The notes under the pieces were generated by a model, which ran no database searches, was not told the DNA's origin, and saw only the letters and a list, made by a program, of their open reading frames with translations. A stretch of DNA of 64,000 nucleotides from the sequence record PP496440.1; one strand, 5' to 3'. Position 1 is the stretch's first letter. Each line of letters starts with the position of its first letter. The translations under genes and the position numbers were made by a program. Below, piece after piece: positions 3,590 through 55,834 of the stretch.

Positions 3590-4270
3590 ATGACCATTTC
3601 GCTCTCGAAGTTCGTTGTCACCACGCCGATGACCGCCAAGGTAGTTAAGGGTAAGAACATTGCCCTTACGGTCAAGGGTGACGATGCCTGTTCCCGTTGT
3701 GCGGAGTTCATCTCGGCCACCCCCGACGGCGAACTAGACCTGTTCGCCCCGACCCATGGCGCGGCCACCGAGTCGGTACACAGAACCCGTACCGAACTGA
3801 TGGAAGCAGACTACTGGGCTTTGGATTCTGCCGCCCACCACTGGCTGCGTCTGGCGATGACCGTCAAGTGCGTCAACAAAGGCGGCCGTGTCGTGATCGG
3901 CCAGTGCCATGTGGAAGATAGCAACAACCCGCTGATCAAGATCTTTTGGGACAAGGAGTCCATCAAGATCGGTTTCCGTGAAAAAGAAACCGAAGAGCCA
4001 GTGACCACCACGGTGTGCCGTGGCGTAGAACTGGGACAGCGGTTCACTCTGGCACTGCACATCACCAAGGCGGGTAGCGTTTCCCTGACCGTATCCGTGG
4101 ACGGCAAGAAGTACAACTTCACGGAGAAGATGGATCCAACGTGGAAAGACTTCGAGTTCAACTTCCATGCCGGCCTGTACAACCAGCTGGACTACTCGGA
4201 CAAGGTCCCTACCACTGACTGCTCCCGTGCGACCATCCACACGCTGGACGTAGACCACGACGCAGCCTAA
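3590..4270 (+). CDS. Polysaccharide lyase family 7 (alginate lyase 2-like)
   Basis: RTELME (RxELRE), IGQCH (QIH), FHAGLYNQ (YFKAGxYxQ), C-terminal LDVDH; no signal peptide. Confidence 0.8.
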   Translation: MTISLSKFVVTTPMTAKVVKGKNIALTVKGDDACSRCAEFISATPDGELDLFAPTHGAATESVHRTRTELMEADYWALDSAAHHWLRLAMTVKCVNKGGRVVIGQCHVEDSNNPLIKIFWDKESIKIGFREKETEEPVTTTVCRGVELGQRFTLALHITKAGSVSLTVSVDGKKYNFTEKMDPTWKDFEFNFHAGLYNQLDYSDKVPTTDCSRATIHTLDVDHDAA

Positions 4271-4364
4271 GCCCCACCAGCCGCCGCAGGCTGAATGATC
4301 CACTAGTGACTTGGGCCATCGGTCCGGTTATCCGGTAGCGTTCAGCCTGCGAGCGTATACGCGC
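4271..4364 (+). ncRNA. Candidate structured RNA element, copy A (unrecognised family)
   Basis: 13-bp stem 4285-4297/4339-4351 flanked by motifs shared with 37000..37108. Confidence 0.4.
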
Positions 4365-4367
4365 CCA

Positions 4368-4417
4368 CAAAAAAGCCCCACCATCCGGTCAAGTGCCGAG
4401 TGAGTGGGGCTTTTTTG
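4368..4417. terminator. Bidirectional intrinsic terminator between convergent genes
   Basis: Perfect 14-bp inverted repeat CAAAAAAGCCCCAC/GTGGGGCTTTTTTG. Confidence 0.85.
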
Positions 4418-4419
4418 TC

Positions 4420-7266
4420 TTACATGGTTACCAGAGTTACAAACCGGTTGGACATTGCGCGAGCTGTCAGCAGAGTTGCCAGCAGTCCTGTGTCTGCCCG
4501 ATACTTCAATACCACCTTATACACTTTGCCCGGTGTCAGACCAGTTGCCACGTATTCCCAAGAGCAAGTAGCGGCAGTCGCCGAGTAGCAGCTTCTGTCG
4601 TCACTGGCCGCGAGCACAACCGTAGCACCTTCGGTCATTGTAAAACTGACCCGAGTACCTGCTGCACACTGAGCCCCGAAGGTCACCCGGATAATCCCGG
4701 ACAGCCCACACGTTATCTGCGCAGTCGGCCCTACCGTGGTCAGATCCACGAAGCCCACACTGAGAGTAGCCTCTGATGTGTTGAGCACAGCGTTGACCAG
4801 CGAGGTACTGTTCGGCGGAATGGCGTAGGTTCCATCTGCCTTGAGGAACTTGCCGGTGTCAGCAATCTTCGGAGCCGGAACCAGACCATGCTTGCCGTCG
4901 GTAGTTGCAGTAGATCCCACCATGTCGGCCAGCCCGGCCAGTACGTTCGCCATGAAGGTGGAACTGTCCTTGACCGACATCAGGCTACGTCCGTAGTCCG
5001 TGGTCAGGAATGCCTTCACCGAACTCGCCAGTGCATCCCCCATGAGCACAGCGTTCTCAGGAAGGGCCAACGCTGAGATGTTGCTAAGGACGGTAGCCTT
5101 GGCTTGATACCCCGACAAATCTGGGGGCGCTACGACGGGTTGCCCACCTTCCAGCTCCACCGTGGTTACCTTGATGGCGTTGTCCGGCAGTGTAGGTTCC
5201 GTTACCAGCCCATTGGTTTCCGTACCTTTGCGCAGCTTGAACGTACCCGTCGTGTCCGCGTAGATCAAATCAATCCGTTGCTGACTGGTACCTGCTGCGG
5301 CAATCGTGAACGTCACCGAGGTACCGTTGATGGTGTAGGTGTTCCCTTTTATTCGCCATTGAATCTGGGTGCCGCTGCGCAGCGTCAGGGTCACGTTCAA
5401 TCCCGTCTGTGTGACTTCCAGCGGAGTCAGCAATCCATCTGCCAGCCCGGCTTTCAACGCCAATGCCTGCGTGATGGTGTCCAGCGCTTGCTGCACCGTC
5501 TTGGGAATCGGCTTGTCAGCATCTGCCGTGTTGTCCACGTGGTCCAATCCGATGTTCGCACGCACCTGAGCTTTCTGGGCGTCAGCCAAGGTCTGAGCAT
5601 TATACCGAACCAGCTCGGTGATTCCCAGATTGGTACGTACCTGTGCACGCTGCTCCGCAGTGAACACCTGATCGGCATCATACCGGAGGAAGTACCCGGT
5701 CAGCAGATCACGCAGCGACGGGCTGTCACCTAACCCCAGCATCTTCAGTCCGAAATCACTGTAAGGTATGTTGACGTTGCTGCCGTCCAGCTTGAAGCCT
5801 AAGAGCGTGGCGGGCGTGGTTCCCATCTTGGCGAGCGCATCCAGCACGTTACTCTTGGCTTGGAACCCCGACAGGTCCGGGGGCGTAACCATCGGTTGTG
5901 CACCTTCCACAAAAACCGAGGTGATACGAATGGTGCTATCCGGCAAGGCAGGTTCAACGGCAGTGACATTGGATTCCACGCCTTTGAGGACGTGCACAGT
6001 GCCGGTCGTATCCCCGTACAGGAGGTCGTATCGCTGCATGCCAACGCCCGACGCGTCCAAGACAAAGGATACTGAAGGTGTAGGGGACGTGTAGGTAACT
6101 CCGTCGATCCGCCATTGCAGGTTGCTGCCGTTGTCACTCGCCAAGCCAATAAGCAGCCCATTGCTGCTGGTAGATATCGGAGTCAGTAATCCATCCTGAA
6201 GGTCAGCCTTTCCGTCCAGCAAGGAGAGGATGTTGGACAACTGATGCAGGACCGAGGTGGGGATCGGCTTGTCGATGTCCGCTGTGTTATCTACCTTGTC
6301 CAAATGCAAGTCAGCTAGGGTTACAGCACCTGTGAGTCCGTTGATCGATGCGACGACCAGACTATCCTTGAGCCGATCCCATGCTTCCCCGTTGGAGATG
6401 ATCCAATCCCCGATCTGCCAATCCTTGTTTCCGTCGATGTTGGTCGTGCCTGCTACCTTGACGATGTAGTACAGTCCCTTGTTCGCCGTGCTCGCCGCTG
6501 GCATGGCTGGCAAGTTCTTATCCGCATCCCACGTCCCCGCGTACCGCAGGCTACCGAGGATGGATTCCGGAAGATAGGATAGGTCGATCTTACGATTGCT
6601 ATCCAGTGGCACCAGCCCACCTGACTGACCCAGCAGAAGAGCGTCCAACTTGGCGTCCAAAGCCATCTGTTGCGGTAGAGATACAGGCTTCTGAGAATCG
6701 GGGATATTGCTTACGTGTTCCAGGCCCACGGCGGCGGGGGTCAGCACATCTAGCAGACGGTCGCCCCGAATGTACTGCCGGAAGGTACCCAACGGGATCA
6801 GGGAGCTGATATCTGGTGCTGTCACCTTACCCAAGTCCGCGAGGGTTCCGTCGGTGTACATCACCATCAGGTTACCCGCAGCATTGATCATCGATGTGGA
6901 GATACCCCGTCCGGCAGACCCTTTGACCGTGCCCGCATATTCCTGATCCCCGTTGGCATAGGTGATCAACAAGCGACCGTCAGCTGTCACTTGCGTTTTC
7001 TGCACCACCTTACCCGTGGTATCACTACCGGCATCCGAGGTGAGTTGATCCTGTGCTGTCAGGAAGGCCTCGTAGCTGGTCATCAAAGACGGACGTGAGC
7101 AGATCAACAGATTATGGTTGACCAACTTGGCGAGTTCTTTCCAGTTCTTGTCAACAACTGCTAAAGACACGTAGTACCACTCGTCTACGCGCATGCGTTT
7201 TCCATTGACCTGTACGTCTTGCTTCACATTCGGAAATTTCCGGAAGCCTACTAATACGTTATCCAT
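4420..7266 (-). CDS. Large virion fibre/decoration-like structural protein with internal repeats
   Basis: LDxVDNTADxDKP repeats, duplicated ~130 aa module, N-terminus similar to that of 7344..9740; ATG 7266 with AGGTG. Confidence 0.6.
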   Translation of the reverse strand: MDNVLVGFRKFPNVKQDVQVNGKRMRVDEWYYVSLAVVDKNWKELAKLVNHNLLICSRPSLMTSYEAFLTAQDQLTSDAGSDTTGKVVQKTQVTADGRLLITYANGDQEYAGTVKGSAGRGISTSMINAAGNLMVMYTDGTLADLGKVTAPDISSLIPLGTFRQYIRGDRLLDVLTPAAVGLEHVSNIPDSQKPVSLPQQMALDAKLDALLLGQSGGLVPLDSNRKIDLSYLPESILGSLRYAGTWDADKNLPAMPAASTANKGLYYIVKVAGTTNIDGNKDWQIGDWIISNGEAWDRLKDSLVVASINGLTGAVTLADLHLDKVDNTADIDKPIPTSVLHQLSNILSLLDGKADLQDGLLTPISTSSNGLLIGLASDNGSNLQWRIDGVTYTSPTPSVSFVLDASGVGMQRYDLLYGDTTGTVHVLKGVESNVTAVEPALPDSTIRITSVFVEGAQPMVTPPDLSGFQAKSNVLDALAKMGTTPATLLGFKLDGSNVNIPYSDFGLKMLGLGDSPSLRDLLTGYFLRYDADQVFTAEQRAQVRTNLGITELVRYNAQTLADAQKAQVRANIGLDHVDNTADADKPIPKTVQQALDTITQALALKAGLADGLLTPLEVTQTGLNVTLTLRSGTQIQWRIKGNTYTINGTSVTFTIAAAGTSQQRIDLIYADTTGTFKLRKGTETNGLVTEPTLPDNAIKVTTVELEGGQPVVAPPDLSGYQAKATVLSNISALALPENAVLMGDALASSVKAFLTTDYGRSLMSVKDSSTFMANVLAGLADMVGSTATTDGKHGLVPAPKIADTGKFLKADGTYAIPPNSTSLVNAVLNTSEATLSVGFVDLTTVGPTAQITCGLSGIIRVTFGAQCAAGTRVSFTMTEGATVVLAASDDRSCYSATAATCSWEYVATGLTPGKVYKVVLKYRADTGLLATLLTARAMSNRFVTLVTM

Positions 7267-14173: not shown

Positions 14174-14182
14174 GATTTACAG
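14174..14182 (-). promoter_or_regulatory. Candidate phage promoter (GTAAAT class)
   Basis: CTGTAAATC in the intergenic region upstream of the acidic protein gene. Confidence 0.35.
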
Positions 14183-14189
14183 CGGTCTT

Positions 14190-15275
14190 TCAGCGACGAC
14201 TTGAACGCGAGGATCTTGTCGAAGTTTTCTCTTTGTCGCGGCTGGTACGGCTGCTGCGTTCCGACCGGCTCGACGTTGATTTACCGGACTTCTCCGGCTT
14301 ATCCGCTTTCGCAGTCTTTTCACGGCGGGAAGTACGCTCTGGCTTCTCTTCACGGCTACTGCGCTTGCTGCCTCGCAGTGGACGATCCGATTCACGTTTA
14401 CGCTTGCTGCCCCGGTCAAGGTCCTTACTGGCTTTCTTGCCTTCTTCCTCGACTTCCTCGGCGTCTGGCGCTTTGGATTCCAAGTTTGCCACTTCCTTTA
14501 CAGCATCAGCATAAGACAGCGGCTGATCGAGGTTGCCTTCGATATCCCACTGCAGATACTTCTGCTCGGTGCGGGTCAACGGAGTAGGGCCAGAGCTGGA
14601 ATCCAGTTGCACGTCGTACATGTCCGACGCCGACTTCGCGTCTTTGTCGTAGGACACCAGCAGGTCACGACCAAACTCAGGGTCGCCCAGCGCCATGATC
14701 TGCACGCCGTTCTTGGTTTTGACCTTGTTGGTGTCTTCCAGCTTCTTGATCTTGCCAGCGATGCGGTCAGTAACCCGCAGTACACGAACCGGGGTCCACG
14801 ATGCGCTGGAGATGCTGTCCATGAAACCGGACTTCTTCTCGTTGGCCGACGGATCAGGAACACGCTTCGGCTCGCTGTCTTGCAGTTCCCGGACGATGAC
14901 GTTCAGATAGTAATACTTCTGCGTCTTCTTCGGGTTTTCGATCTCAGCGAACGGGCACTCGATGGTGGTGTCGAACGTGTCGGCCTCACGGTCGAAGTTC
15001 AGCGGGGTGAACGGCAGATCGATCGGCGTGCCATCGTTCTTGTTGATCGTGATCCGATACACCACCTCGGGGATTGGATCGCCGACGATACGCACCGCGA
15101 TAAAAGAACCGTTCGGTGGGTATTCCAGCATCTTCACTTTCTTGTTGAAGTAAACTTTCTTGCCACCGGTCTGGCCAGCATTGGTCGCACCGAAACCTTT
15201 ACGAGCTGGGGCAGCACCAACGCTACCACCTCCGCCAGTACGGCTACGACCGGTTCTTGCACTGTCACGTGCCAT
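14190..15275 (-). CDS. T4 gp32-like single-stranded DNA-binding protein with basic RS-rich tail
   Basis: VRIVG...CPF...YYYLNVIVR...DPEFGRDL...YDV...PTPLT pattern; upstream of uvsX. Confidence 0.6.
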   Translation of the reverse strand: MARDSARTGRSRTGGGGSVGAAPARKGFGATNAGQTGGKKVYFNKKVKMLEYPPNGSFIAVRIVGDPIPEVVYRITINKNDGTPIDLPFTPLNFDREADTFDTTIECPFAEIENPKKTQKYYYLNVIVRELQDSEPKRVPDPSANEKKSGFMDSISSASWTPVRVLRVTDRIAGKIKKLEDTNKVKTKNGVQIMALGDPEFGRDLLVSYDKDAKSASDMYDVQLDSSSGPTPLTRTEQKYLQWDIEGNLDQPLSYADAVKEVANLESKAPDAEEVEEEGKKASKDLDRGSKRKRESDRPLRGSKRSSREEKPERTSRREKTAKADKPEKSGKSTSSRSERSSRTSRDKEKTSTRSSRSSRR

Positions 15276-15307
15276 GGTACATCCTCTTTCGGTTAGCTTA
15301 CATCCCG

Positions 15308-15316
15308 TATTTACAG
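15308..15316 (-). promoter_or_regulatory. Candidate phage promoter (GTAAATA class)
   Basis: CTGTAAATA 33 nt upstream of the SSB start. Confidence 0.5.
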
Positions 15317-15334
15317 GATCTGATTTGGGGTGGA

Positions 15335-19633: not shown

Positions 19634-19668
19634 AAAAACCCGCGTCCCAGTTTCCCAGAACGCGGGTT
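19634..19668 (-). terminator. Intrinsic terminator
   Basis: AACCCGCGT/ACGCGGGTT stem followed by UUUUU on the minus strand. Confidence 0.7.
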
Positions 19669-19678
19669 GGTTACACGC

Positions 19679-19687
19679 TATTTACAG
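19679..19687 (-). promoter_or_regulatory. Candidate phage promoter (GTAAATA class)
   Basis: CTGTAAATA upstream of the TGT-like gene, but also upstream of the terminator hairpin. Confidence 0.35.
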
Positions 19688-19702
19688 GCGTGTTGGCCCT
19701 AC

Positions 19703-29206: not shown

Positions 29207-32200
29207 TTACCACTGGAGGAAGATTACGCCTGCTTTACCTGCGCTGCCGTTCCCGCCTTTTGCCGCGCTGACGTTGGCGTAGTTCTGGCGAGTATACGCA
29301 CCGCCACCGCCACCGCCACCTGCACCGTAACCAATCGAGGCTGACCCGTTGCTACCCGGACCGTTGGCCTGACGACCACCACCACCGCCCGTACCCCAAG
29401 GAGTACCTGCACCGGCACCGCCCGCACCACCCAGATACAAGCCGGGGGCGTCTTGTCCGTCGGTAACACCGGGAACAAGGCTAATACCGCCTGCGCCCGA
29501 AGCGGTGCCACCTACTGAACCACGTATACCTCCACCTAGGGTAAGAAGTGTGGTAGATCCGAGTTTGAACGTGGTAGCACTACCGTTACCCCCTTGCAGA
29601 CCTGCACCTGCCTCACTACCTACCACACCTTGAGCCAAAGCCGGTCCACCATTACCTCCTGCGCCACCGCCACCGATGGTAATGGTATAGGTGCTTCCCG
29701 GTACTACCGTGATCGGAGTAAGAACTGCATACGTACCACAACCACCACCCGAACCCCCACCTGAGCCACTGTCTGAGGCGCCACCGCCCCCCGCACCACC
29801 GCCACCGCCACCGCAACCCGAAAGGTAAACAGTGGTCACACCTGCTGGACACAACCAAGAGCCACTAGCAGTAAACGTCTGAACGCCGGTGAATTGCCCG
29901 ATCATGTCTTGCGGCGCTACGATCGAACCCCGGTCAACGATCCAGTAGGAGGTGCCACTTGTTGCCAGCTCCAATGTCTCCAGTGGTTGCATGGTGATCT
30001 GCTGCACCGAACCAGAGTCACTGATGGTTGCACCGGACGGAGCTACAATCGTCTGAACCGTGGAAGTCGGGTTGCGGAACACGAAGGTTGCACCCGGAAG
30101 CAACGTGGTAGGATCTGGGAGCGTTACTGTGATTCCACTACCCGCCAGGTTCAACCAGTAGCCGGAATGGGAGACGTCCAACGTGATGCTAGCGGATACC
30201 CCGACACCGACACCTTTGAACTTACGTGACTGCGAGAAGTTCAAGTTCTGTGCATAGGCCGTGTTAGCCAGACGAGTGCTGTTGTCCGTGGTAGGTGGTG
30301 TAGGTGCGGTCGGAGTTCCGATTAATGAAGGCGAGTCAGTGGCTACCGCCTCGTTCCACGCAGTCCAGTTTCCACCTGCCTGACTCCGCCAGAACATCCT
30401 GTTGTTGGAGTTAAGAGCAGTAGCAATCTGTAGGCAACCCCCACCGTTGTAGGGGACCACGATGACTGAGAAGTTAGACGAGATAGGAATGTTGGCCGTG
30501 GTAGACTGAGCGCGGTACAAGCCACCCAATACAGCCTGGTTCATGTCGTTGCCGGTGACGATGTTGCTGACCAGCGTGCCTAGGCCCCATGCTGCCAACT
30601 GGTTCTGAACGAACGCGGTGTTAGCGATGGTCAGGTCGGTATCACCCAGCGCAGCTGTAGGGGCCTGCGGGTCACCAGTGAATACCGGAGAATCTGTAGT
30701 AGCCAGTTCTTTCCATGGGAACCAGGCACCATCATGCTTGACCCGCGTGAAGGTACGGTTGCGGCCCGACGGGAAGATCGAGCTGGCGTACTGCGTTACT
30801 CGAAACGCCCCAGGTACACCAATGGTGATCAGGGTGAAGGCTACTGCTGTCGTACCCGCAACACCCAAGAGTGGACGGTTGTAGGTAGTCGAGTTGGTTT
30901 CCGTACCTTCGGCCTTAACGAAGGAGTTCAACGGGGCGTCGTTGAAGTTCAGAGTGTCGCCGCTGATCGCGGAACCACCCAACCCAGATGCACCCATCAA
31001 ACCTTGCACGAAAGCGGTGTTGGCAATACTCAGGTCGTTGTCTGCCAACGATGCTGTAGGAGCCTTGGGATCGCCGGTGAACGTCGGCGAATCCAGGCTT
31101 GCAATTTCACGCCATTGCGACCATTGAGTAACGCTGTTTACCTGCCCGTTGGACACCCGCTGGAACATGCGGTTGTTAGCCTGCGGCATGAAAATCTGCT
31201 GGGTGTAATACAGAGCGTTAGTGGCAACAATCACAACGCCGGACAGGAAGTTGTTACCTAGGATCGTGATAGTAGAACTGACCTGATACGTGCCCCCTTC
31301 GGTCAAGGCATTGATATCAGTGCTGATATCATCCATGTCCGAGGTACCCATACCGTACTTCGCTATGATATTGCGAACGAAGGCCGTGGTAGCAACCGAG
31401 GTGTCGTTGTCTGTGGTTACCGGCGTCGGAGCCTTCGGGTCACCAGTGAAGACTGGGGAGTCCAGCGCAGCAAACTCTTTCCACCCACCCCACGAATTCG
31501 ACGCGCGAACACGCCAAAAGATTCTGGTCGGGTTCAACGGAGAGGCCCAGATCTGCAATGCTGCGCTGCCGTCTCCGAACGGAGTATGGATCAGCAGGCC
31601 GTTCGATGCGTAGGGTACACCTGTTGCCGTAGTCGAAGCGTTGTAATAGAACCCTCCCAGTGTCACTGCGTTCAGATCGGTGATGTTGGCTGCGCCTGCA
31701 GTGCCGATACCGAACATCGCCATAGCTGCTCTTACGAACGCCGTATTTGCCACCGAAGTATCGCTGTCGGTGGCCGCAGCAGTCGGAGCCTTGGGATCGC
31801 CGGTGAACGTCGGCGAGTCAATCGTCGCCTTGGTAGCAATCAGGTTGTTCATCGTGGTTGCGAAGTTGGGATCGTCTCCCAGTGCCGCAGCCAGTTCGTT
31901 CAAGGTGTCCAATGCGCCCGGCGAAGAATCGATCAACGCCGCAATCGCCAGCTTCACGAAGGCCGTGGTAGCAACCGAGTTGTCATTGTCTGTCAGCGGC
32001 GGAGTTGGTGCCTTGGGATCACCAGTGAACGTCGGGCTGTTGATCGGTGCGTACGCCGTCAGGTCAACTCGGGTACTGCTTACGAGTTGGAAGCTCGCCC
32101 CGTCGTAGAACACGTCATGCACCTTACCTACCGACAGCTCGCCGCCTGTGAGGGCATCCGTACCATTGGACGTAATTGACTTGGCGCCCAAATTGTTCAG

Positions 32201-36611: not shown

Positions 36612-36995
36612 TTAGGAGGCTGGGCGTTTAAGATCGCCGCCAACGGAATAGTTACCGTCTAAGCCTTGGATGTAGAAGTTCAGCTGGACGTAATACATCT
36701 GGGCGTCCATGTAAGGGATAACCGAAGACGACTTCATGTCCAACCGGAGGCGGGGTTCATACTTCTGAATGCCCCCGATGAAGTGAGCCATGATCATCGA
36801 GGCCGTATCGGAATTGATGGGCTCGAATAATAGGTCTCGAAGATCGGGATCGATGTCAGGACGAAACAATCGCTGCTTCTGCCCGGTGTTCATCAAATTG
36901 TCCAGCGCCTGATAAACTGCTGACTCATTGAACTGGAGCGGAAGCCCAGACAATGGATCGTTGCTCAAGTCGCTGTAGAGTACCGTGATCGCCAT
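36612..36995 (-). CDS. Baseplate wedge gp25-like protein
   Basis: AVYQALDNLMNT...RLFRPD...LLFEP...IQKYEPR. Confidence 0.85.
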   Translation of the reverse strand: MAITVLYSDLSNDPLSGLPLQFNESAVYQALDNLMNTGQKQRLFRPDIDPDLRDLLFEPINSDTASMIMAHFIGGIQKYEPRLRLDMKSSSVIPYMDAQMYYVQLNFYIQGLDGNYSVGGDLKRPAS

Positions 36996-36999
36996 AGTC

Positions 37000-37108
37000 C
37001 GGCTCCAGCGTGCCGCCCGTATACGCTCACAGGCGGGGTTTTACGTGATGAGTGGTTAAATGGTACGTCCCGATAAATAACGAGCCCGCCTGCCGCCGCT
37101 GGGGGCCG
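37000..37108 (-). ncRNA. Candidate structured RNA element, copy B, occluding the gp25 RBS
   Basis: Shares flanking motifs with 4271..4364; inner stem GCAGGCGGG/CCCGCCTGT; outer stem covers GGAG. Confidence 0.45.
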
Positions 37109-37131
37109 TTACAGTTCAACCTGATTCCACG

Positions 37132-37632
37132 TCAGTTCTTGCCGCGTAGTTCCAGTGTGCTCGCCGACGAAGCCGTCGGAAAGAACTCTACTACAGGGTC
37201 TCCCTTGGAATCAGTGAAAAGCCGCTCCGGTAGATTAACCTCAGGGATTGTCGTTGCAGCGTTGGACGCCGCTGACGGAGATAAGCTACTGGGAGGTGGA
37301 ACGGCTACCATTTTTTCCTTGTCGTCTCCTTCCTTACTTCGGGAGGAGTTGAACCTGCTATACAACTCGCTGATTTGACTCTGTTGATTTCGGAACTGCT
37401 CCGTGGTTTCCCGGTTGAACTTGGTCTGGGTAGACACGAAGGAGATTACCGTCTTCTTCAAAGCATCGATGTCAGCGCTAACAGGAGCCTGCTTGGCATA
37501 GCGATCTTCCACAAAGAAATACATGGAGAACAACGCAATGACAATGGCTATTACTTGGGTAGGCGAGAGACGGATGGCAGAAACTTCTGTGTTAGGAGAA
37601 GGTGTGCCTCCGCTTGCGGGTTGACCAGCCAT
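37132..37632 (-). CDS. Hypothetical membrane protein
   Basis: TM VIAIVIALFSMYFFV followed by coiled coil; GAGG RBS. Confidence 0.7.
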   Translation of the reverse strand: MAGQPASGGTPSPNTEVSAIRLSPTQVIAIVIALFSMYFFVEDRYAKQAPVSADIDALKKTVISFVSTQTKFNRETTEQFRNQQSQISELYSRFNSSRSKEGDDKEKMVAVPPPSSLSPSAASNAATTIPEVNLPERLFTDSKGDPVVEFFPTASSASTLELRGKN

Positions 37633-40166: not shown

Positions 40167-40214
40167 TATTTTCTCCTGTTCGGGCGCTGTGCCATGTCAT
40201 TCAAATCATGCCCA

Positions 40215-40222
40215 TAATTAGG
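40215..40222 (-). promoter_or_regulatory. Candidate phage promoter (CTAATTA class)
   Basis: CCTAATTA about 50 nt upstream of the 40166 start, intergenic. Confidence 0.45.
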
Positions 40223-40234
40223 CCTTTTGCGTGT

Positions 40235-55376: not shown

Positions 55377-55420
55377 ACTAGTGCTGCTCCTACTCTCGAA
55401 TTGGCATGTGTCAATACGGC

Positions 55421-55429
55421 TATTTACCG
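55421..55429 (-). promoter_or_regulatory. Candidate phage promoter (GTAAATA class)
   Basis: CGGTAAATAGC identical to 24271..24281; overlaps the HNH stop codon. Confidence 0.4.
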
Positions 55430-55834
55430 TTTGTTTTGCCGTGCGATCTTCTTCCGCTGCTCATCTTTATATAGGTGACCATGCAGGAAATTCTTGGAAT
55501 GACACGCGGGGCATAACGGGATCAGGTTGGACTTGCTGTCGGTGCCGCCACGGGATGCCTGCTTGATATGGTGCAGCGCGAGCCGCCCACCGTCAGGGAT
55601 CTTGCTCTGGTGAATGCCACAGCGACCGCAGCAGTTGTTGAAGACCGCTTTGACTTCCTTCTTACGGTCCTTCCACTCGTCCGTCTTGAGCCCGCCCAAG
55701 TACGTTGCCTTCTTGGCTCGCTTGACGATACCGGTCTTGCTGATACCCGAACCAGTCGATGGGCGTGCTATCTTGATGCCCGGCTTGCCCGGCTTACGGG
55801 GGCCATTGATCCGGGCACGGGGCGGCGTTTTCAT
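55424..55834 (-). CDS. HNH endonuclease
   Basis: CGRC...LHHIK...GG..SKSNLIPLCPACH. Confidence 0.85.
   Translation of the reverse strand: MKTPPRARINGPRKPGKPGIKIARPSTGSGISKTGIVKRAKKATYLGGLKTDEWKDRKKEVKAVFNNCCGRCGIHQSKIPDGGRLALHHIKQASRGGTDSKSNLIPLCPACHSKNFLHGHLYKDEQRKKIARQNKR

Follow-up and report, generated by a model that had tools for sequence, protein, structure and literature searches.

A REP-like hairpin repeat as a candidate punctuation element in the gp25 spacer of the Pseudomonas putida jumbo phage KoPa-5

The spacer in front of the gp25-like baseplate wedge gene of Pseudomonas phage vB_PpuM-KoPa-5 (PP496440.1) harbors a copy, here called copy B, of a hairpin repeat with six loci in the phage genome. 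With moderate confidence we take copy B to be a REP-like repeat private to the genus G3, which would punctuate transcript ends and one intercistronic gap, probably by way of mRNA stability, processing or read-through. The stretch of DNA that was analysed (the window) comprises 64,000 nt of this record, and record positions are obtained by adding 62000 to window positions. KoPa-5 belongs to genus cluster G3 and is a jumbo myovirus of P. putida with a genome of 201 kb; it is part of the CEPEST collection, and the paper on that collection contains no promoter or RNA analysis (bioRxiv 10.1101/2024.03.26.586772). Phage Voja-6 is 100% identical to the window over two compared stretches, and eight more cluster G3 phages have 92-100% identity over the gp25-spacer locus. 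The spacer was compared in nine phages, and both copies, A and B, from seven phages were aligned (14 sequences, 9 distinct). The most divergent relative in the comparison is Peetri, which has a genome-wide identity to KoPa-5 of 87.9%.

The spacer between KoPa5_00123 and the gp25-like gene has a length of 136 nt; homologues of KoPa5_00123 adjoin gp25 also in the Vibrio phages GR11A and GR7B. Upon re-reading of the minus strand, all features named in the initial annotation were found where it had placed them. The features are, in window positions:

37132-37632, minus: KoPa5_00123, hypothetical protein of 166 aa, stop codon TGA at 37134-37132 (annotation)
37097-37108, minus: 5′ strand of the outer stem proposed in the initial annotation (CGGCCCCCAGCG), specific to copy B, overlaps P0 bases
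37015-37102, minus: copy B element in gene-sense orientation, two boxes and helix
37088-37102, minus: box 1 of copy B (CCAGCGGCGGCAGGC), at up to 1 mismatch present only here and in copy A in 201 kb
37085-37093, minus: 5′ strand of P1, pairs with 37029-37037, paired in every sequence
37038-37084, minus: variable, A/T-rich loop of 47 nt, no promoter-like motif of the phage inside
37029-37037, minus: 3′ strand of P1, pairs with 37085-37093
37023-37026, minus: helix base P0, GCGT (37026-37023) pairing with box-1 bases 37099, 37098, 37096 and 37095, invariant in 14 sequences
37015-37034, minus: box 2 of copy B (GCCTGTGAGCGTATACGGGC), found solely in copies A and B
37000-37010, minus: 3′ strand of the proposed outer stem (CGCTGGAGCCG), contains the Shine-Dalgarno (SD) sequence GGAG at 37006-37003
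36612-36995, minus: gp25-like baseplate wedge gene (PHROG 261/43, PF04965, annotation)
4277-4364, plus: copy A, with box 1 at 4277-4291, P1 at 4286-4297 / 4339-4350 (12 bp) and box 2 at 4345-4364
4369-4416, plus: bidirectional intrinsic terminator 3′ of copy A, where a tail gene (4420-7266, minus) converges

Copy B had been described as the second copy of the element seen in copy A, and this is borne out by both boxes, an equal gap between them and a common helix with compensatory changes. Box 1 (CCAGCSGCSGCAGGC) and box 2 (GCCTGYGAGCGTATACGSGC) each have exactly two sites in the 201-kb genome, always together, and the count stayed at two each in searches that tolerated 1 mismatch for box 1 and 3 for box 2. 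The gap from box 1 to box 2 is exactly 53 nt in A and B alike, and the two 53-nt interiors are ~40% identical. Full-length nhmmer searches connect the copies with E = 0.04 (A to B) and E = 0.09 (B to A). Plain BLAST of A versus B returns a single 17-mer (E = 0.22), and a repeat search did not report the pair because the loops differ.

From the gapless alignment of A and B from the seven phages a consensus helix is obtained that consists of P1 (9 bp) and, beyond a bulge and a small internal loop, of P0 (4 bp). All 13 pairs are formed in each of the 9 distinct sequences, and sliding the partner strand, as a control on this helix, lowers pairing to 19-49%. Between A and B two pairs are fully compensated (U-A/G-C and A-U/G-C), both of which represent one evolutionary event, the divergence of A and B; two other pairs vary through wobble alone. 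The two variable bases of box 1 are exactly the unpaired ones, in the bulge and in the internal loop, and a C->T change within P1 retains a G-U pair. In copy B the inner stem (37093-37085 / 37037-37029) indeed has 8 Watson-Crick pairs and one G-U pair, and GAGCGTATACG is found at 37028-37018 (minus) and again at 4351-4361 (plus). This motif had been called unpaired, which does not hold, since its GAGCG part is paired in the consensus fold. With respect to a sensor domain, A and B share one interrupted 13-bp helix and their loops are not conserved. All non-Watson-Crick pairs in the helix are G-U on the gene-sense strand and would be A-C on the other strand, which makes a sense RNA mildly more likely than an antisense RNA or a DNA cruciform. 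We infer from the sequences that RNA is the active form of the element and that its role would be one of punctuation.

Wherever A and B differ within the boxes, the change is at a third base of one reading frame and is synonymous in it (PAAAG; ACERIRA); a GCC->GCT change in copy A of Peetri is likewise synonymous in this frame. An open reading frame with a start codon covering the boxes was found in neither A nor B, and the third-base pattern is possibly a relic of a coding sequence or a side effect of a GCN repeat.

Copies A and B are part of a larger family. The pattern GCAGGC-N(52-63)-GCCTGC is present at record positions 31202 (locus E), 54528 (D), 66286 (A), 87921 (F) and 133061 (C), and copy B, with GCCTGT, is the sixth locus; ~0.45 hexamer pairs are expected by chance in the 52-63-nt spacing. 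Perfect-hexamer pairs within 200 nt amount to 7 in total versus 7.4 expected, so that the total is at the chance number and the excess is specific to the 52-63-nt spacing. Local alignments chain the loci as B-A-C-(D,F)-E above the 99th percentile of the background. Copy C has box 1 (CCAGCTGCTGCAGGC) and the 53-nt spacing, and its 3′ tail, which differs, is common to D. Copy A is the closest paralogue of copy B, and the family signature is GCAGGC, a free spacer of 52-63 nt and GCCTGY. Peetri retains each of the six loci. An A/B-type covariance model retrieves only A and B from KoPa-5, and A, B and, weakly, C from Peetri; in the two nearest outgroup phages, which are Vibrio phages, it has no match.

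The loci do not appear to be placed at random. Four of them are intergenic and lie directly after stop codons or terminators, and three of the five convergent gene junctions in the annotation carry a copy (D, A and C); the other two have a bidirectional terminator alone. Copy A begins 6 nt past the TAA of an alginate-lyase-like gene (3590-4270; PF08787, E = 4e-38) and is followed by its terminator at the convergent junction, leaving it with no downstream gene to regulate. Loci E and F are weaker family members and lie within coding sequence, F in an annotated gene with a third-position substitution bias and E in an unannotated lipoprotein-like open reading frame. The latter (record 31129-31427) has a GTG start overlapping the previous stop, a lipoprotein-type signal peptide and a LAGC lipobox, and it fills an annotated gap of 299 nt.

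The six-locus family was found only in the G3 genus of P. putida jumbo phages. An exact scan of IMG/VR for box 2 gave six matches, all of which lack box 1 and were discarded as chance. The bipartite box pattern had no match in IMG/VR, one in metagenome contigs and two in genome contigs (185,579 species genomes). The metagenome match lies inside a membrane-fusion protein gene, both genome-contig matches are from Lachnospiraceae and one of these is inside a MetK gene; the matches outside the genus are taken as chance occurrences.

No gp25 relatives were found in IMG/VR. In the nearest metagenomic relative (49% identity) the genes overlap and there is no spacer, and two Vibrio phages at about 40% protein identity have, in the homologous gap, an intrinsic terminator (GR7B) or hairpins (GR11A). 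From the terminator, the hairpins and the spacer-free relative, punctuation between the hub/spike and the wedge genes seems to recur at this position.

How is gp25 transcribed? The phage encodes a sigma factor (PF04542) and has three classes of promoter-like motifs: a sigma-70-like TTGACA...TGCTATAAT; GTAAAT-N5/6-TATAAt, located on the gene-sense strand 17-28 nt ahead of start codons; and CCTAATTA. In the B spacer, a sigma-70-like site and all three motif classes are absent, which makes it probable that gp25 is expressed from a late polycistronic mRNA, with copy B between two cistrons. A search for expression data turned up one run, which holds 8% of the sampled words and is not recorded as RNA. 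A promoter in box 2 or in the loop was rejected, given that a sigma-70 site is absent and box 2 shares just the -10-like half of GTAAAT-N5/6-TATAAt. So was a sigma-54-like GGCAC..GC, whose spacing is off by 1 nt and which is missing in copy A. The sense strand of the spacer has no terminator-like site, and the 3′ strand of P1 is followed by GAGCG... and no T run; as a hairpin without a U-tract, copy B does not qualify as an intrinsic terminator. Coding explanations were discarded as well. Behind the UGA of gene 123 there is a C, and the frame stays open for 34 sense codons up to a point inside box 2, but for a read-through product (37029-37134, minus) the Peetri substitutions in frame are all non-synonymous and Pori-4 has a 1-nt deletion. 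Small open reading frames in the spacer or an N-terminal extension of gp25 would lack a start codon.

A REP-like hairpin repeat in such a polycistronic mRNA would act as follows. The sense-strand transcript would form the 13-bp interrupted helix (P0 and P1) under a large variable loop. Most family members sit just past stop codons and at the ends of transcription units, and copy B occupies the one long spacer of the baseplate operon, at the place where the distant Vibrio-phage relatives have a terminator or hairpins. There, an intercistronic or 3′-end hairpin may slow 3′-exonucleases, attenuate read-through or serve as a processing site, and the hub/spike cistrons would thereby be uncoupled from the wedge cistrons. 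Several observations run counter to this preferred reading. P1 is not predicted for copy B in a 169-nt context, where two local hairpins are preferred, the conservation of A and B is unremarkable, the two compensated pairs amount to one event, and two loci of the family are in coding sequence. Moreover, the spacers of the family fall into classes about one helical turn apart, which hints at a constraint at the level of DNA.

The initial annotation had suggested a different role, in which the element is a switch that sequesters the gp25 ribosome-binding site (RBS). Box 1 of copy B and its 5′ flank would pair with the SD region and thereby close P1, a core bound by a ligand or a protein would toggle gp25 translation, and the same core would control the terminator in copy A. 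We consider this quite unlikely. What stands of the proposal is that there is a second copy and that one copy abuts a terminator and the other an RBS, which puts the same core into two regulatory contexts. In addition, GGAG (37006-37003) does sit 7 nt 5′ of the gp25 ATG (36995-36993). The outer stem CGGCCCCCAGCG / CGCTGGAGCCG is real and strong, with 6 + 4 Watson-Crick pairs on the two sides of a small, asymmetric internal loop and a duplex energy of -19.2 kcal/mol, which is matched by 2.2% of 232 gene starts in the genome. However, 12% of dinucleotide shuffles of the G+C-rich spacer pair equally well, and an RBS-covering outer stem is not clearly beyond chance.

Sequestration can thus be drawn, but as a switch it is supported neither by folding nor by copy A nor by the relatives. 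The minimum free energy (MFE) structure of a 169-nt transcript model (-58.8 kcal/mol) is made up of local hairpins in the surroundings of the two boxes. A constraint that enforces P1 leads to a best fold that also takes the outer stem, in a coaxial arrangement, but this fold has -52.0 kcal/mol, 6.8 above the MFE, and the ensemble pair probabilities of P1 and of the outer stem in copy B are both near 0 in this context. The B spacer folds no better than its shuffles (z = -0.82). The SD is mostly paired in the predicted MFE structure, too, and a clear on/off contrast is therefore missing. Furthermore, the outer stem and P0 compete for the same box-1 bases and exclude each other; it is P0 that is common to A and B and conserved in both, whereas the outer stem is present in B alone and the remaining family members lack box 2. 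As the spacer is nearly invariant in the nine phages, the relatives provide almost no covariation test; the sole change in the stem, C->A at 37010 in Peetri, breaks the innermost pair and is uncompensated. Peetri has also lost 1 nt between its SD and the gp25 ATG. Rfam has zero matches in the whole window at gathering thresholds, and in E-value mode one sub-threshold match, Thr_leader over the copy A terminator (26.9 bits versus a gathering threshold of 55).

Riboswitches and protein-bound translational operators, such as the T4 RegA, gp32 and gp43 operators and the T4 gene 25 leader hairpin, have in common with copy B a structured leader by the SD of a phage structural gene, and the core is seen here in two expression contexts. 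Unlike these systems, copy B has no Rfam match and one helix in place of a conserved multi-helix aptamer, and its platform helix is unsupported by thermodynamics or variation. The riboswitch-like reading is therefore unsupported, given the lack of an Rfam match and a platform helix that lies 6.8 kcal/mol above the MFE, is missing in A and has a pair broken by its one substitution; a ligand- or protein-operated RBS switch is not supported for copy B. This spares reporter and probing work, for which the smaller chance of a trans-acting partner shared by A and B would be the sole justification.

Copy A has a counterpart that could speak for such a switch. Its 5′ flank (AAGCCCCACCA, 4269-4279) is a repeat of the left arm of the terminator (4373-4383) and could in principle compete for the right arm; in the predicted fold the terminator hairpin is by far the more stable. 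The inner 22 nt of the terminator hairpin (4382-4403) are exactly reverse-complemented in Peetri and Pori-4 versus KoPa-5, SKa-4, Aura, Illi-2 and Amme-1; here, the interior of the hairpin is flipped between its inverted arms.

A and B might also be two cis-sites of one circuit, in which P0/P1 and the conserved 3′ tail with the self-complementary CGUAUACG would be read by one phage factor, or in which the lyase 3′-UTR RNA (A), stable and capped by the terminator, would pair via the palindrome with the gp25 leader (B). This is a very improbable arrangement; it would couple the synthesis of the tail enzyme to that of the baseplate wedge via different platforms, the terminator (A) and the RBS (B). 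The sites lambda nut and HK022 put are cis-acting RNAs with two sense-strand copies per genome in opposite orientation, one of them just past a gene and before a terminator. Likewise, A and B are two sense-strand copies in opposite orientation, and A lies between a gene end and a terminator. However, nut and put sites are close to promoters and ahead of terminators at which transcription has to continue, whereas the terminator behind copy A is at a convergent junction, and transcription past it would yield antisense RNA.

In a comparison of KoPa-5 with Peetri, A and B each have an identity of 95.9%, above the 82-92% of their flanking genes. As 14% of all 97-nt windows are conserved as much as A and B (the B spacer ranks 19th of 91 gaps), conservation neither proves nor excludes a function, and purifying selection on the element is not demonstrable from these identities. 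The element could lack a function, being either a recombination scar or a palindromic selfish element that has survived in spacers of no essential role; its complementarity to the RBS would be accidental. Its few copies, private to one genus, would fit this view, as would a conservation not above that of many other spacers, the tolerance of a coding context by two copies and the state of copy C, which is just 65% conserved: in Peetri (134997-135070) the interior of this copy (record 133061-133125) is replaced by 62 nt and partly inverted, and the GCAGGC/GCCTGC arms and the flanks stay. Nevertheless, we regard an element without function as rather unlikely. Boxes, helix and exact spacing are held between A and B while the loops have drifted apart, all six loci are retained in Peetri, and placement at transcript ends appears non-random.

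A site acting at the level of DNA would be another explanation, and we rate it as rather unlikely as well. The inverted hexamers or the CGTATACG palindrome might be bound by a phage or host protein, be it a topoisomerase or gyrase, the Arc-like RHH protein, or a structure-specific protein where convergent junctions are under supercoil stress. The arm-to-arm spacers are in two classes, 52-53 and 62-63 nt, ~one DNA helical turn apart, despite loops that are unrelated in sequence. This quantisation argues for a DNA site, and so do loop interiors that have flipped or been replaced in close relatives, an event at the level of DNA. The phage has genes for topoisomerase II subunits, and the family appears enriched at convergent junctions, as is reported for bacterial REP sequences (PMC1525189). 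Against this, the B hexamer changes (GCAGGT, GCCTGT) preserve RNA wobble but degrade the DNA half-site at non-equivalent positions. The initial annotation had offered an operator for the RHH protein as its alternative; an Arc/HicB-type RHH gene does exist at 2538-2966, but CGTATACG is at chance frequency (7 in the genome versus 7.5 expected, mostly in genes and 5 of the 7 outside the element) and copy A has no downstream gene.

Among known systems the family most closely brings to mind the REP sequences, which are implicated in mRNA stabilisation, attenuation and gyrase binding. Bacterial REP sequences are short imperfect extragenic palindromes that form part of the transcript of the gene upstream and are often found between convergent genes (PMC1525189). 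As in REP/BIME, the elements described here are short imperfect palindromes in several copies per genome. The copies are linked by chained similarity; 4 of the 6 loci are extragenic and 2 lie in coding sequence. They differ in copy number, six in a phage and not hundreds per chromosome, and in their variable loop of 52-63 nt, whereas REP is a compact palindrome of 35-40 nt. The record annotation contains no RAYT-type (TnpA-REP) transposase. PeSLs (promoter-early stem-loops), known from T4-like phages, combine a terminator with an early promoter in one cassette; they are located in hyperplastic regions, mediate module swapping and are, like the present family, phage-private intergenic repeats around a stem-loop at the borders of gene modules (PMC4122927). 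In contrast to PeSLs, copy B has no promoter motif and no U-tract, and no module exchange is seen at A or B among the nine phages. A PeSL-type cassette was rejected for copy B since the early promoter is missing from the spacer. If the punctuation role proves true, it would add a phage example of REP-like elements, explain how hub/spike and wedge proteins can be made in differing amounts from a long late operon without separate promoters, and point to inverted repeats prone to recombination where transcription units end in a newly described genus of jumbo phages.

Some minor observations concern the promoter-like motifs of the phage elsewhere. GTAAAT-N5/6-TATAAt sites are present in the window at 14175-14200, 15290-15320, 19660-19690 and 55400-55430 (minus), and many more in the rest of the record; ATTTACA/TGTAAAT is 14-fold enriched in intergenic gaps. 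The TTGACA..TGCTATAAT sites are followed by a conserved CCACTGTCCCAAGAGGAA leader, and the CCTAATTA sites include the window gap 40167-40234.
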